A DNA stretch of 64,000 bases from the NCBI GenBank assembly GCA_002269645.1, contig NIVC01000462.1, positions 153,516 to 217,515 on the forward strand. Direction: 5' to 3'. Positions 15,425 to 41,165 of this stretch are shown here, one piece after another. The translations under genes and the position numbers were made by a program. Each line of letters opens with the position of its first letter. Within the stretch, counting starts at the first letter, position 1. This stretch comes from Macrostomum lignano. Its lineage: Eukaryota. Below the pieces are notes generated by a model, which was not told the origin of the DNA, ran no database searches, and was given only the letters and a program-made list of their open reading frames with translations.

Positions 15425-15655
15425 AACAGTCTCACAGCTTCATCCAGTCCTACTCAGTCTCACAGCTTCATCCAGACCCACTCAGCCTCACAGCTTCATC
15501 CAGACCCACTCAGCCTCACAGCTTCATCCAGACCCACTCAGCCTCACAGCTTCATCCAGACCCACTCAGCCTCACAGCTTCATCCAGACCCACTCAGCCT
15601 CACAGCTTCATCCAGACCCACTCAGCCTCACAGCTTCATCCAGACCCACTCGGCC
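15425..15655 (-). repeat. 28-bp minisatellite (8 copies) spanning the stop codon of WSC-PAN copy 3
   Basis: cagcttcatc recurs every 28 bp from 15435 to 15631. Confidence 0.95.
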
Positions 15656-16509
15656 TCGCTGGCCACCTCAGCGGGCACAGCGGCGAATCTCAGCAGGCGG
15701 CACATGCGGCTCGAAGGCACGAAGGCGCAGCCCTGACAGTCCGGGCTGCCGTAGCAGATGGTGGCGCATTCAACTGCACTGCTGGCTGCAATGCTGCGGT
15801 GAGTGATGGAGCTCGCGGAGGCTGTGATGTTCAGCAGAGACGTCACGGGCAGTTTCGGCATCACCGGATTGACTGCAGAAGGGTTGGTTGAAAATATGGC
15901 ATGCCAATATTATTGTTAATATTTTTATCGGTCAAATCAATTCGAATATTGCTTGTAAAATCTCCCAATGAGAACTGATTTTAATGAAAAAAGAGTTCAG
16001 TGTTTTTAGGTCGTCCTTCGCTAAATTTACGCAACCTGTGTTTACACTTGTACAAGCTGCGTTAATCCGGAACGCTTACTTGGTGAGTAAGTCAATTCGT
16101 AGATAGAATTTCTGTAAGCTCCACCGCAAATTTGAGACGAGTTCCCGCTGCAAGCTCTGCTGCAGTCGCCAGCCGGTGCGATGCCGTGCGATCCGTAGGC
16201 CGAGCCGCAGCAGCAGAAGCTGTGGAGCTGAACTCCAAAGTAGCGAAATCGGCCGTAAGAGCACATGTGGCTGCACAGTTGCAGTGTCATCTTGGCGCCA
16301 TCGTAGACAAATGCTGGGAAACCAGGGTGAGTCTCAAACTGTCCGAACTTTTTGACTCCCTCCAGTCCTACAAGATCTCGGTTGCCATCAGCGCCATCCA
16401 CGTAGCAGCCGAGGTGGCGAAACTCCAACGGTTGAGGCGGCACGGAAACAGCGGCGAAGCGTCCGGAACCGGCTGCCCAGCAGAGCAGCAGAGCGCAGAG
16501 TTTCAGCAT
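15628..16509 (-). CDS. Secreted WSC + PAN/Apple-like protein, copy 3 (subfamily A), 224 aa
   Basis: Exon 1 16509-16080: MLKLCALLLCWAAG signal plus WSC motifs, donor GTAAGC. Exon 2 15872-15628 after cttctgcAG. Phase 1. Confidence 0.88.
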
Positions 16510-16750
16510 TGGGAAAAAAAACTAGAGAGTGGCCGAACTACAGTTTCTGAGGACCCTTCTTCTGGTTCTGGTAAGAAATTTAGGTAGGTAGTATATTTGC
16601 TGGAAGAAGCCAATGGAGAATTGACCACCAATGCTGAGCTAGGATTGGCTGAGGTTTCACCCTAATAGGAAAAAGATATCGACCACTGATGAGTAGCAAG
16701 ACAAGAATATATCTGAAAAATTTCTGATACTGTCTTCAAAAAGTTCAAAA

Positions 16751-17543
16751 GATAGATAGATAGATAGATAGATAGATAGATAGATAGATAGATAGATAGA
16801 TAGATAGATAGATAGATAGATAGATAGATAGATAGATAGATAGATAGATAGATAGATAGATAGATAGATAGATAGATAGATAGATAGATAGATAGATAGA
16901 TAGATCGATAGATAGATAGATAGATACATAGATAGATAGATAGATAGATAGATAGATACACAGATAGATAGATAGATAGATAGATAGATAGATAGATAGA
17001 TAGATAGATAGATAGATAGATAGATAGATAGATAGATAGATAGATAGATAGATAGATAGATAGATAGATAGATAGATAGATAGATAGATAGATAGATAGA
17101 TAGATAGATAGATAGATAGATAGATAGATAGATAGATAGATAGATAGATAGATAGATAGATAGATAGATAGATAGATAGATAGATAGATAGATAGATAGA
17201 TAGATAGATAGATAGATAGATAGATAGATAGATAGATAGATAGATAGATAGATAGATAGATAGATAGATAGATAGATAGATAGATAGATAGATAGATAGA
17301 TAGATAGATAGATAGATAGATAGATAGATAGATAGATAGATAGATAGATAGATAGATAGATAGATAGATAGATAGATAGATAGATAGATAGATAGATAGA
17401 TAGATAGATAGATAGATAGATAGATAGATAGATAGATAGATAGATAGATAGATAGATAGATAGATAGATAGATAGATAGATAGATAGATAGATAGATAGA
17501 TAGATAGATAGATAGATAGATAGATAGATATATAGATAGATAT
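16751..17543. repeat. (GATA)n microsatellite, about 790 bp
   Basis: Directly visible and nearly perfect. It explains the YLSI ORFs. Confidence 0.99.
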
Positions 17544-17834
17544 CGTGCGATCCGATCCGTAGGCCGAGCCGCAGCAGCAGTAGGCCGCAGACTGAACTCC
17601 AAAGTAGCGAAATCGGCCGTAAGAGCACATCTGGCTGCACAGTTGCAGTGTCATCTTGGCGAAGTCGAAACCGAATGCTGGGATACCAGCGTGAGTCTCA
17701 AACTGTCCGAACTTTTTGACTCCCTCCAGTCCTGCAAGATCTCGGTTGCCAACAGCGCCATCCACGTAGCAGCCGAGGTGGCGAAACTCCAACGGTTGAG
17801 GCGGCACTGCAGCAGCAACGCAGCATCCGGAACC
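17544..17834 (-). pseudogene. WSC exon-1 pseudogene (subfamily A)
   Basis: PPQPLEFRHLGCYVDG...CCCGSAYGS then runs into (GATA)n. The start codon and signal peptide are deleted at 17834 relative to copies at 16.5/30.9 kb (gaacc microhomology). Confidence 0.85.
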
Positions 17835-37865: not shown

Positions 37866-38684
37866 AGCTGAGTTGCTCCCAGAGCTGTAAGCTGACTTTA
37901 ATTCGCTAAGTTTGCTGATTCTGGTTTTGCTCATTTTTGCGCATTCAAATATTTACTCTCATGCTCCCATCTGAATACCTGCATTATATCTATTGATTGT
38001 AATACATAAAACACTTTTTATTACACTAAAGGTGCTGTCGGATAGACTAAAAGGTTAAAGCCTCTGGGACGAGATAGCGATACAACAGGTTATTATACAC
38101 ATAGACACATCGATTTTACTGGAAGAATTCATACTTGTAAGGCAAATATTAAATTAATCAAACGCTAAATTTTAGACTGAAGAAAAGCTCAGAGGCTTGA
38201 AACCGATCGTCAGTTTCAGAACTCAAATACGCCGTGACCTCTCATCTTTCTCTTTGCGCTTCTTGCCTTTGCTCCTTGATCTTGAGCAGCCGAACAGATG
38301 TCTTGAAAAGCTACCCTGTTAGACTAACAGAATATGAGGTGCCGAGAACACCAAGAACTATTCAGCTTATCTCCAAGTAAGCTTTCTTGTCAAAAAAAAT
38401 GACAAAATCATTATTTGCAGGGATGCAAAAAGCTAGGATAAGGTAGGAACGTGTGTGTATTTCCGTGAAAAAATCTCCTAAGGAAAAATTACAAGGGAAG
38501 GAGAGAAAAAAAAATTTATTGGCTTTTAATGAGAATATTCACTTGTGATTTCAAAGCAAATCAAAGGTATGAATTAAGGAGAATCCACTCCGACTGGATG
38601 TTACTGAGAGGTCTGCAACCACTACAATTATAACTATGAATGGATAGTCTGCATGGATATATCAATATTACCCATAGTACAGGC

Positions 38685-39060
38685 CACGGGTTGGCAAACT
38701 TTTTACCTCCTGGACCAGATAAAGAATTCAGTCCTTGGCCGCGGGCCAGATAAGAGTGGAAAGGAGAAGGAACAGAATACAAGAGCTAAGAGAAGATTGG
38801 AGGCAAGAGGTGGGTTGAGAGTAGAGAGGGTAGAAGGTGAAGAGTAGAGGGGGGAGGGGAGAGAAGGGAGAGGAGGAGGTAGGAGATAAAAAGGGGAGAG
38901 AAGAGAGAGCAGAGGAGAGGGTAGCGAGGGGAGAGAGTAGAGATAGAGGAGAAGGGAGATAGAGGAGATGAGAGGGGAGAGAGAAGAGGGGAGAGAGAGG
39001 GGAGAGAAGGGAAAAGAAGAGAGTTAAAAGGAAAGCTTAACCGGGCCGGATTGAGAGACT
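38685..39060. mobile_element. hAT-like GA-rich MITE, partial copy
   Basis: Starts cacgggttggcaaactttt (reverse complement of the 14.3 kb right end). GA tract 38.79-39.03 kb. Confidence 0.5.
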
Positions 39061-40308
39061 CAATTGTAGAAATCAAGCTACAAGAACTTTTAACTGAGAC
39101 AATCCTGTGGAATCCAACAGGCTTTTCAACACAGAATTTTGCATAAAATTCCCAAATATCGTCAGAAGTGTGCATGAGGCGTTGAGGCGGATTGGGTGAG
39201 CCTTGACGCTGAAATTATCGGAGAACATGGAATTAATGAAGAGGCTGGTGGTGAACAGGCTGCAGCTGGCAGGACACTTCTTCATCATTGAAATAATCAG
39301 TTCGCACAATGACGCCAAAGACGGTCCTGTGAAAAATCTGACTCAATAGAGAACTCGCAGCAAATCAGCGCAAAACGTTTTGGACGAAATATCGGACAGG
39401 ACCGTTGGCCACACATCTTCTGGCAAGCGTGCTGAGTAGCTTAACCGCGTGTTTGCCTAAACTATTTTTTTGCAAGCACCGTCTGCAATGCAACCAAGGA
39501 CTACTCAAGTATCATATATATAGGACGCAACACTCGAAATCTATGGTAAATGTTTTGAAAGCAACTTTTTGCCGAAAAATACACTACAGAGATAGGAGGT
39601 TTAAATTTTTTCAGCACAAAATTGTTATTGCTTTTGATAGGAGGCAGATCCAGTGTTCATGCTTTGATATCTTGTGCCTTTCTTTTTGCTCTATCGATAT
39701 TCATAAAGCTTTTCGTTCAGAAATAGTTTTAAAGGCAGGTTTCACCGAAAAAATACACTACGGAGATATGAAATTTCACGATTTTCAACACTAAAACAGT
39801 GATTGGGTCTCTTAACAATGTCAGAGAAAGCTTTCCTTGAATGCAACCACTAGTCAGCTAACAAATATTGTCAATTACAATACCAGTCAGGACCGATTTT
39901 CCAAAAATACATGTTCAACGCAATTAAATGAAACTATTCTTTTTCCTTTGAAGTTTTATCAGTGCACAGTCGCCACTAATAAGCGGTTTTAGCTGTCTAG
40001 ACAACTGACAGGCAATAAAAGAATTCGTGTCAAAAGGCACGTCTTAAAACTTTTGATTTGCATTCGTTACTATAGATAGATTTATAAATATTAAGATATA
40101 AACCATAGCCAAAATATGGCTCTCTTGTATTTTAAAAAGTTTCTCACGATTATTACTAAGAATTTTTATCAATGTTTGATATTACACCGAACAGATTCGA
40201 AGCTTCATCCAGACCTACTCAGCCTCACAGCTTCATCCAGACCTACTCAGCTTCAAAGCTTCATGCAGACCCACTCAGCCTCACAGCTTCATCCAGAACC
40301 ACTCAGTC

Positions 40309-41165
40309 TCACTGCTTCATCCAGACCTCCTCAGCCTCGCTGGCCACCTCAGCGGGCACAGCGGCGAATCTCAGCAGGCGGCACATGCGGCTCGAAGGCA
40401 CGAAGGCGCAGCCCTGACAGTCCGGGCTGCTGTAGCAGATGGTGGCGCATTCAACGGCACTGCTGGCTACGATGCTGCGGTGAGTGACGGAGCTCTCGGA
40501 GGCTGTGATGTTCGGCAAAGACGTCACGGGCAGTTTCGGCATCACCGGATCGACTGCAGAAGGGTTGGTAGAAAATAATTTTGACTTAAGTATTTTGATT
40601 GGTCAGATTTATTATACTATTGCTGGCAAAATGGCCCAGTTCGAACTACATTCAAGAATGACCTCAGAACCCTGGGTCTTTCAGTCGTCTGGCTCAGTGA
40701 GACTCTCTTTACGCTTCTAGCTCGTACGTGCTGCGTTAATCCAGAATGCTTACTTGGCGAGTAAGTCAGTTTGTAGATAGAGTTTCTCGAGACTCCACCG
40801 CAAATCTGAGACGAGTTTCCGCTGCAAGCCAAGCTGCAGTTGCCAGCCGGTGCGATGCCGTGCGATCCGTAGGCCGAGCCGCAGCAGCAGTAGCTGTGGT
40901 GCTGAACTCCAAAGTAGCGAAATCGGCCGTAAGAGCACATCTGGCTGCACAGTTGTAGTGTCATCTTGGCGATGTAGTAAACGAATGCTATGGAATGAGG
41001 GTGAGTCTTAAACTCTCCGAACGTTTTGACCCCCTGCAGTCCTACAAGATCTCGGTGGCCATCAGCGCCATCCACGTAGCAGCCGAGGTGGCGAAACTCC
41101 AACGGTTGAGGCGGCAGCGCAACAGCGGCTGCCCAGCAGAGCAGCAAAGCGCAGAGTTTCAGCAT
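40309..41165 (-). CDS. Secreted WSC + PAN/Apple-like protein, copy 7 (subfamily A), 218 aa
   Basis: Exon 1 41165-40754, exon 2 40553-40309. Canonical sites, phase 1. The signal region is 6 codons shorter than in copy 3. Confidence 0.88.

Follow-up and report, generated by a model that had tools for sequence, protein, structure and literature searches.

Hypervariable WSC loops beside a scaffold homogenised by gene conversion in a tandem gene array of Macrostomum lignano

Introduction

How can a single exon of a tandemly repeated gene hold segments that hardly differ between copies and, directly beside them, short patches in which most codons do? This question is raised by an array of genes with a WSC and a PAN/Apple domain in a 64,000-nucleotide (nt) stretch of the genome of the flatworm Macrostomum lignano (GenBank assembly GCA_002269645.1, contig NIVC01000462.1, positions 153,516 to 217,515 of the forward strand). 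We refer to this whole stretch as the window, and all positions count from its first letter. The original prediction, made from the sequence of the window, had proposed that four hypervariable patches in the WSC exon diversify under selection on a ligand-binding surface, comparable to the loops of complementarity-determining regions (CDRs), and that variants are shuffled between copies. Our analysis shows that the near-invariant framework is a product of homogenisation by gene conversion and not of recent origin, which changes how the contrast between framework and patches has to be read. We favor, with a probability of roughly 0.55, a germline-encoded repertoire of secreted binding proteins of the WSC-PAN type, in which conversion would keep the scaffold uniform and loop cassettes at the binding end would be retained and reassorted. 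Selection for loop diversity is likely but unproven.

Five Copies of One Two-Exon Gene

All peptide motifs quoted in the original prediction lie in five tandem copies (A1–A5) of one two-exon gene on the minus strand, and the span from 15628 to 41165 given there starts and ends exactly at the A1 stop codon and the A5 ATG. Exon 1 encodes a signal peptide (MLKLCALLLCWAAGSG) and the WSC domain. It is followed by a GT..AG intron of 163–207 nt and by exon 2, which encodes a linker and the PAN/Apple domain with the C-terminus EAEWVWMKL or EAEWVWMKQ. The splice junction yields the string YSPIDPVM, as in the UniRef paralogs. A1, A3, A4, and A5 are intact, with 218–224 residues, canonical splice sites and a conserved promoter. 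A1 (15628–16509, 224 residues) has exon 1 at 16080–16509, a GT..AG intron of 207 nt and exon 2 at 15628–15872, and it ends in EAEWVWMKL and the stop codon. The other intact copies are A3 (30071–30910, 224 residues; exon 1 30481–30910, exon 2 30071–30315), A4 (33557–34391, 223 residues; exon 1 33965–34391, exon 2 33557–33801) and A5 (40309–41165, 218 residues; exon 1 40754–41165, exon 2 40309–40553). The quoted strings are thus all present, but A2 (17553–17840) is a truncated pseudogene. Of its WSC exon, 96 codons are left in frame and include patches 1 and 2 of its own; ATG and signal peptide are deleted, and an (AGAT)198 microsatellite (16750–17542) stands in place of the 3' half of the WSC exon.

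The domain assignments are supported by Pfam. WSC (PF01822) scores 47 bits in A1 and 56.7 and 56.9 bits in the more diverged window members B1 and C1 (gathering cutoff 27.8), and PAN_1 (PF00024) scores 26.6, 31.8, and 27.5 bits in exon 2 of A1, A3, and C1 (gathering cutoff 21.4). The nearest relatives are predicted M. lignano WSC-domain proteins in UniRef, with 78–88% identity.

Could the copies and their patches result from assembly errors, collapsed haplotypes or non-functional pseudogenes? A2 and several exon fragments exist in the window, and the A5-like UniRef entry P0005 (A0A1I8GBL5) has the framework between patches 1 and 2 in another frame, returning to frame at patch 2. Its QDDTTTVQPDVLLRPISLLW equals AKMTLQLCSQMCSYGRFRYFG read two bases downstream; with compensating indels at or near the two patches, P0005 is either a pseudogene or a mis-prediction. 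An artefact is nevertheless hardly tenable given the four intact copies. Furthermore, it is ruled out by independent predictions: 11 UniRef entries (P0001–P0006, P0043–P0046; P0045 duplicates the P0003 WSC domain) have the same architecture and the same variable positions, and the patch sequences of the UniRef paralogs differ from those of every copy in the window.

Location and Strength of the Hypervariable Patches

Patch 1 covers residues 62–71 of A1 (PGFPAFVYDG) and lies at 16297–16326 in A1, 17661–17690 in A2, 30698–30727 in A3, 34182–34208 in A4, where one in-frame 3-nt deletion occurs, and 40971–41000 in A5. Patch 2 (residues 95–98, LHSF in A1) is found at 16216–16227, 17580–17591, 30617–30628, 34101–34112, and 40890–40901 in A1 to A5, respectively. 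The remaining two are present in the intact copies A1, A3, A4, and A5. Patch 3 (residues 114–118, GDCSR in A1; 16156–16170, 30557–30571, 34041–34055, and 40830–40844) varies at positions 114, 115, and 118 around Cys116, and patch 4 (residues 131–133, AYR in A1; 16111–16119, 30512–30520, 33996–34004, and 40785–40793) follows directly after the CGG motif. The four patches are therefore where the original prediction had placed them; a fifth, small one had been overlooked. It comprises residues 40–41 (16387–16392 in A1), which read AD, AV, GS, AS, or GN, two residues past the conserved Asp38.

The claim of multi-base codon replacement against a near-invariant background is confirmed by the counts. 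Between copies, 74% of codon pairs in the patches differ, 46% of these at two or more bases, compared to 13% in the framework (the rest of the mature WSC exon), 8% of these at two or more bases. Patch 2 is the extreme case: up to 9 of its 12 nt differ, and its flanks of 68 and 28 nt contain 1–5 and 0–1 differences, respectively.

As the 24 patch columns were defined on the window copies, they were retested on paralogs from outside the window, which avoids circularity. Among seven other M. lignano UniRef paralogs, 16 of 24 patch columns vary, compared to 21 of the 97 remaining columns of the mature WSC exon (Fisher p = 4.7e-5); the first five of these paralogs alone give p = 1.8e-5. In a second subfamily (P0008, P0009, P0010, and P0012) the enrichment is weaker (9 of 23 vs. 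15 of 97 columns, p = 0.015) and patch 2 is conserved. A set of 12 paralogs shows as many as seven alternative residues at positions 63, 64, and 71, and the 11 paralogs that have a patch 1 sequence have 11 distinct ones.

The stretch between the RDL and MT motifs is indeed unusually long, with 27 residues in A1 and nine in KREMEN1. This corresponds to an 18-residue insertion in loop L2, of which the N-terminal half is conserved and the C-terminal half is patch 1. The Pfam WSC profile aligns with A1 only from profile position 17 on.

The Patches Map to a Putative Binding Face

An AlphaFold2 (AF2) model of A1 exon 1 has a mean predicted local distance difference test score (pLDDT) of 86, with block means of about 88–97 across the domain. 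Its top Foldseek matches are the WSC domain of KREMEN1 (5fws, E = 3.7e-6) and yeast Wsc1 (7pz2), and the order of its elements is as expected for a beta1-beta5-beta3-beta4-beta2 sheet with one helix, i.e., a PAN-like fold. A full-length model of P0003 reached a pLDDT of 46 and was discarded as too poor to confirm the PAN fold. According to the alignment to KREMEN1, A1 has the eight-cysteine WSC pattern (1-6, 2-4, 3-5, 7-8) and the CGG motif (residues 128–130). The pairs C35/C116, C79/C99, C83/C101, and C120/C128, which are predicted pairings, align with the disulfides of KREMEN1 (PMC5014086). Subfamily A has CCC at A1 residues 99–101 (16207–16215), where KREMEN1 has CFC; the additional cysteine, C100, brings the WSC domain to nine cysteines, and the PAN exon encodes five. 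Because both numbers are odd, they suggest an interdomain or intermolecular disulfide.

In the AF2 model, patch 1 lies within loop L2, which connects beta2 to the helix, and is coil apart from a bridge at residues 68–69 (block-mean pLDDT about 88–90); patch 2 forms the turn of the beta3-beta4 hairpin (L4). Patches 3 and 4 belong to the long L5 loop, with patch 4 at the N-terminal start of beta5, and the small patch at residues 40–41 is a site in L1. In Wsc1, L5 together with L1, L2, and L4 caps the PAN-like fold at one end, and the CGG motif lies between L4, the beta5 start and the crossing stretch of L5 (PMC9024836).

A second solved structure is that of KREMEN1. Its WSC domain contacts DKK1 through D125, N140, E162, S163, Y165, and D201, and an engineered glycan at V189 abolishes DKK1 binding (PMC5014086). 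In the profile alignment, D125, N140, E162, S163, Y165, D201, and V189 correspond to D38, A72, Q94, L95, S97, A131, and A119 of A1. Thus, S163 and Y165 fall inside patch 2 and D201 inside patch 4, and N140, E162, and V189 are one residue outside patches 1, 2, and 3, respectively; the seventh position, D125, is the conserved D38. Since six of the seven positions implicated in DKK1 binding align with or abut patches, we read the patches as a binding surface. The variable positions coincide with the surface that binds a protein in a solved homologue, which supports this reading. As far as homology to solved WSC structures can tell, the idea of CDR-like loops on one ligand-binding face is supported, and these loops may bind a ligand in the flatworm proteins as well.

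Concerted Evolution of the Scaffold

Two explanations for the near-identity of the framework come to mind, recent duplication and long-term purifying selection. Both fail. Pairwise p-distances are 0.13–0.23 in the promoter and 0.25–0.36 in the intron, compared to 0.05 at framework silent sites, which are thus 4–6 times less diverged than the intron and 2–4 times less than the promoter. Recent duplication as the cause of the invariant framework is ruled out by this excess of promoter and intron divergence, which is 3–6 times that of the framework. Moreover, divergence at framework third positions does not exceed that at first positions (p-distances of 0.069, 0.035, and 0.054 at codon positions 1, 2, and 3), and the similarity therefore does not reflect long-term purifying selection. 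The contrast is also visible in the neighbours A1 and A2, which are 1.4 kb apart: 3 of 213 framework nt differ, compared to 25 of 135 in the promoter and 18 of 42 in the patches. The A2 framework is 98.6% identical to that of A1 despite its pseudogene state.

Traces of individual exchanges are found as well. A tract of about 45 nt in exon 2 of A3 (30189–30233, minus strand) resembles gene C1 of subfamily C, also a WSC plus PAN gene (10971–11879, minus strand; WSC exon approximately 11496–11879, PAN exon 10971–11210). Of the sites that discriminate the two types within it, 17 match C1, one matches the A consensus and five match neither, whereas nearly all discriminating sites 5' of the tract are A-type; the tract can be read as the product of gene conversion or recombination. 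Subfamilies A and C also have a nearly identical final stretch of 118 nt in the PAN exon (CAFVPSSRMCRLLRFAAVPAEVASEAEWVWMKL; 10971–11088 vs. 15628–15745 and the other A copies), yet the WSC exons of A and C share only about 55% identity in protein. Finally, parsimony-informative sites back different splits in runs along the gene: A1 and A3 are joined against A4 and A5 at nine of ten informative intron sites, A1 and A5 in the 3' flank and A1 and A4 in the area of patch 4. Taken together, the contrast between silent and non-coding sites, the A1–A2 comparison, the A3 tract, the shared 118 nt and the incongruent splits show inter-paralog gene conversion or recombination, i.e., concerted evolution of the scaffold.

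Reassortment of Patch Variants

The patches take part in exchange between copies. LHSF in patch 2 is encoded by the same nucleotides in A1 and A4. The two types of patch 2 (H-rich or A/S-rich) and the two types of patch 3 (GDCSR or GNCSL) occur in all four combinations, in A1, P0002, A5, and P0001. P0046 joins patch 1 of P0003 (PLAPAFG.D) to patches 2–4 of the A4/P0004 type, and A2 and P0003 have AFGFD and SAA in common and differ at positions 62–64 and 71. The mosaic sharing from which shuffling had been proposed is accordingly real: patch variants recur in different backgrounds (LHSF in A1 and A4, P0046). Because variants recombine among paralogs, they would be old lineages that move between backgrounds, which speaks against purely in-place divergence.

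A more radical version of this idea is that functional genes actively swap loop segments with each other and with pseudogenes like A2 that act as donors, perhaps in somatic cells too. The outcome would be an open-ended flatworm recognition repertoire, a lectin-fold analogue of the gene-conversion-based diversification of antibodies that might serve immunity or mate and sperm recognition. We consider it a long shot. Within the window, 11-mers across each patch were found only in the A copies themselves, and none of the scattered WSC and PAN exon relics in the window matches any patch variant of an A copy.

Selection Tests on Patches and Framework

Codon-level tests comprise the window copies (four complete and one partial), because DNA of the A-type UniRef paralogs was not found: the look-up found no contig that encodes P0001 or P0002, and P0007, of another subfamily, lies at locus L001 as the single family member there. 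Nei-Gojobori (NG86) means over the six pairs of intact copies give synonymous divergence (dS) and non-synonymous divergence (dN) of 0.090 and 0.044 for the WSC framework, 0.55 and 0.48 for the patches and 0.157 and 0.070 for the PAN exon, next to a divergence K of 0.37 for the intron (17% gap columns) and 0.21 for the 200 nt upstream. Hence, whether dN/dS is elevated in the patches, the check proposed for the original prediction, depends on the neutral yardstick chosen: patch dN is 5.3 times framework dS and 1.3 times intron K.

We wrote a codon-likelihood program for this purpose; under model M0 it gives an omega of 0.62, in agreement with the counting estimate. The comparison of M1a with M2a yields a likelihood-ratio test (LRT) statistic of 12.2–12.5 (p = 0.002) on all three four-taxon topologies. 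M2a assigns about 10% of sites an omega of about 4, and naive empirical Bayes (NEB) posteriors exceed 0.9 at sites 63, 64, 65, and 118 (0.98 at site 118). When patches and framework are treated as partitions with common branch lengths, the patches have an omega of 2.8–3.9 (p = 4e-5 to 2e-7 against 1). Neither premise of M1a and M2a, a uniform synonymous rate and the absence of recombination, holds here. At synonymous sites and third positions, the patches are about 4–6 times as diverged as the framework and equal to the intron. Giving the patches a rate of their own, which comes out 3.4–4.1 times higher, yields a better-fitting model (p = 0.003 to 0.0008). As this step brings patch omega down to the neighbourhood of 1, the classical selection signal is largely a comparison of old patches with a young framework. 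The diversifying selection originally proposed is therefore backed by the site model and left without support once patches have a rate of their own; the data do not require positive selection. The array is a cautionary case, in which a standard site-model test reports positive selection and local synonymous divergence together with gene conversion explains most of the signal.

Taken literally, the original prediction describes recent duplicates whose patches then diverged in place under strong positive selection, with omega well above 1. The ratio of patch dN to framework dS, the significant M2a test and the patch omega under shared branch lengths are what such a history would produce. It is improbable all the same: promoter and intron divergence far exceeds that of framework silent sites even between the neighbours A1 and A2, the silent divergence of the patches is itself raised, conversion tracts and incongruent segments can be demonstrated, and the same patch variants occur in different backgrounds.

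The raised patch rate, strongly preferred by the models, might alternatively point to a local mutational hot spot, in which multinucleotide, templated or targeted mutation increases silent and replacement changes alike. The high share of codon differences at two or more bases would fit such a process. However, third positions of codons 62–65 are invariant while their first and second positions vary, the window contains no donor templates for patch variants outside the A copies, and no mechanism is visible in the sequence. Variants that are shared and reassorted point to old lineages rather than to fresh mutation. We thus regard a hot spot as decidedly improbable.

What Maintains Loop Diversity?

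The reading that we prefer, a germline repertoire, can be outlined as follows. The tandem array encodes small secreted proteins, each with a signal peptide, one WSC and one PAN/Apple domain, and repeated short-tract gene conversion between copies would keep the scaffold codons near-identical. Four to five segments of WSC loops (L2, L4, two stretches of L5 and the small L1 site) would escape homogenisation. Diverged as much as the intron or more, these segments would persist as old lineages and be reassorted as small cassettes. With the loops predicted on the face with which KREMEN1 binds DKK1, at one end of the PAN-like fold, the paralogs would have a scaffold in common but differ in the binding surface that each displays, and the array as a whole would represent a germline repertoire of specificities. 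Tracts that carry patches would otherwise homogenise them, and hence selection against homogenisation probably protects the diversity of the loops.

WSC domains bind glycans in fungi. The WSC domain of KREMEN1 binds a protein (PMC5014086). In the flatworm proteins, either a glycan or a protein might serve as ligand. Candidate roles are those of an immune-type lectin or of a seminal-fluid component with an effect on the mating partner. WSC-type proteins are conspicuous among the prostate-limited, putative seminal-fluid transcripts of M. lignano (PMC5977470, PMC6953679, PMC4490696). The part of Table S1 of PMC5977470 that comprises its first 30 rows contains an explicit WSC-type annotation in at least seven of them, and the prostate-limited Mlig-pro46 has homology to WSCD2 (PMC6953679). 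Diversification driven by sexual conflict is a plausible setting; an immune-lectin role is equally possible. M. lignano is a transgenic model amenable to RNA interference (RNAi) and used for sexual conflict and regeneration. Given this tractability and the prominence of WSC proteins in its set of seminal-fluid candidates, the family could be used to test directly if such diversity is driven by recognition in reproduction or in immunity.

Several observations weigh against a selected repertoire. Apart from the small set of copies available to the codon-level tests, the NG86 ratio of dN to dS in the patches is 0.88, and with a patch-specific rate patch omega is 1.0–1.15, no different from 1. Site models are prone to false positives under recombination and multinucleotide change, both of which occur here. 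The clustering of the patches in space is a prediction from homologous structures and topology. The pseudogene A2 has unique patches beside a homogenised framework, which a mechanical barrier to conversion fits as well as selection does. Regarding the seminal-fluid context, none of the 18 RNAi primer pairs of PMC6953679 matches the window or L001 at up to three mismatches. Likewise, conserved strings of the A genes were not found in the candidate-transcript sequences of the PMC4490696 supplements, and these primer and string searches revealed no link of the family to any published M. lignano transcript.

Some of these points are shared by the rival that we take most seriously, although we consider it doubtful. 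According to this explanation, the loops are unconstrained parts of the surface that drift at the neutral rate. Conversion would homogenise only those stretches that have stayed similar, and dense mismatches in the loops would abort heteroduplex tracts, so that diversity persists with no selection for it. Such neutrality agrees with a patch omega near 1, with patch third positions (0.31) close to the intron (0.29) and with the patches of A2. However, the homogenised segments between patches measure only 36–69 nt, so that conversion could hardly act on each of them independently with much efficiency. Since cassettes are exchanged among paralogs, tracts can cross the patches, and yet diversity is near maximal, with every patch 1 distinct. 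The M2a test is significant, and the patches match a known binding face rather than arbitrary loops (PMC5014086). Codon positions provide a further hint of selection. In the 20 patch codons, p-distances at positions 1, 2, and 3 are 0.32, 0.46, and 0.31; at the 11 most variable codons, whose choice is partly circular, they are 0.49, 0.64, and 0.30, so that second positions are about twice as diverged as third positions and the intron (0.29 over all positions). The promoter value is 0.18.

Other Features of the Window

A conserved promoter block (CAGCCAATC ... CCATTGGCT ... AGCAAATATA) precedes the A copies on the minus strand at 16592–16651, 17887–17947, 30988–31047, 34467–34527, and 41243–41267, and is still present 5' of the pseudogene A2. 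Located about 80–140 nt before the ATG, it comprises two CCAAT boxes, one of them inverted (CCATTGGCT), and AGCAAATATA; judging from conservation and the resemblance to CCAAT boxes, it may function as a promoter element. In addition to C1, more diverged WSC plus PAN members are B1 (6855–8441) and B2 (19230–19962). Fragments of WSC or PAN exons, some with stop codons, lie at 22759–22836, 26988–27190, 32493–32744, and 42722–42802. These scattered relics show that copies have arisen and decayed repeatedly, and they might act as donors in conversion.

The C-terminal PAN module is almost invariant in protein even in subfamilies with 41–55% identity overall (P0007–P0012). Downstream of A genes, a 28-bp minisatellite repeats the last eight codons of the PAN exon and the stop codon (GGCTGAGTGGGTCTGGATGAAGCTGTGA), with 8.2 copies at A1 (15427–15657), 4.9 at A5 (40201–40338) and two at A4 (33536–33590); none was detected at A3 at a Tandem Repeats Finder (TRF) score of at least 80. 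As the unit is not a multiple of three, every repeat has its own TGA, in-frame or out-of-frame. Long simple or minisatellite arrays between the genes are located at 43774–44795 ((GAGAGAG)n, about 1 kb), 27300–27945 (24-bp unit, 26 copies, with repeated CATTGGCT motifs), 23572–23833 (48-bp unit, 5.5 copies), 51059–51695 (17- and 29-bp units) and 52493–53152 (11-bp unit, 60 copies). An open reading frame (ORF) fragment on the minus strand (50129–50692) matches the kinesin-associated Microtub_bd family (PF16796, 59 bits) and is presumably an exon of a neighbouring gene at the edge of the WSC-PAN array. A long ORF on the plus strand (55297–57024) matches the Pfam Mucin-like family (PF16058, 42 bits), contains 15 tandem 33-bp repeats at 56515–57014 and is probably part of an unrelated gene for a secreted repetitive protein.

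Comparison With Known Systems

The closest structural parallel is the WSC domain of KREMEN1 (PDB 5FWS/5FWW), which has the same fold, the eight-cysteine pattern and the CGG motif. KREMEN1 itself is, however, a conserved co-receptor that spans the membrane, also contains Kringle and CUB domains and is encoded by a single-copy gene, whereas the flatworm genes form a multi-copy array, encode small secreted proteins of WSC and PAN and differ by the 18-residue insertion in L2 and by CCC in place of CFC. The WSC-type seminal-fluid candidates of M. lignano are similar in another respect, being secreted WSC-domain proteins of the same species, many from multi-copy loci.

In its mode of evolution, the array resembles the peptide-binding region of class I and II molecules of the major histocompatibility complex (MHC), where short gene conversion events reshuffle old motif lineages while the background is homogenised. 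The likeness extends to short polymorphic motifs at a ligand surface, raised silent divergence near these motifs, patchwork sharing and homogenisation of the rest. The fold is a different one, and an omega above 1, firmly documented for MHC, is not established for the flatworm genes. Furthermore, the flatworm diversity is found between tandem paralogs in one genome, unlike that of MHC.

Conopeptide and other venom or secretory gene superfamilies combine conserved signal and scaffold codons, silent sites included, with hypervariable mature regions. As in the A genes, near-invariant and hypervariable segments share one exon, cysteine codons are conserved and the products are secreted and disulfide-rich. 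In conopeptides, however, the whole mature peptide between the cysteines varies, whereas variation in the flatworm genes concerns 20–24 of about 120 codons in discrete loops of a folded domain. Plant NLRs and other tandem receptor arrays, in which solvent-exposed residues vary, snail FREPs and sea urchin 185/333 are germline repertoire families. They, too, consist of tandem paralogs that exchange sequence and vary mainly where recognition takes place; their domains are unrelated to WSC, and the somatic diversification reported for FREPs has no counterpart suggested by our data.

We found no report of hypervariable binding loops on a WSC or PAN-like fold, or of this flatworm family, in the searchable literature. 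The kind of system, a tandem repertoire with variable binding loops and concerted evolution, is well known; its example on a WSC fold in a flatworm is so far undescribed. If the loops set ligand specificity, the array would represent a compact natural repertoire on a WSC/PAN-like scaffold beside those of MHC, conopeptides, NLRs, FREPs, and 185/333.

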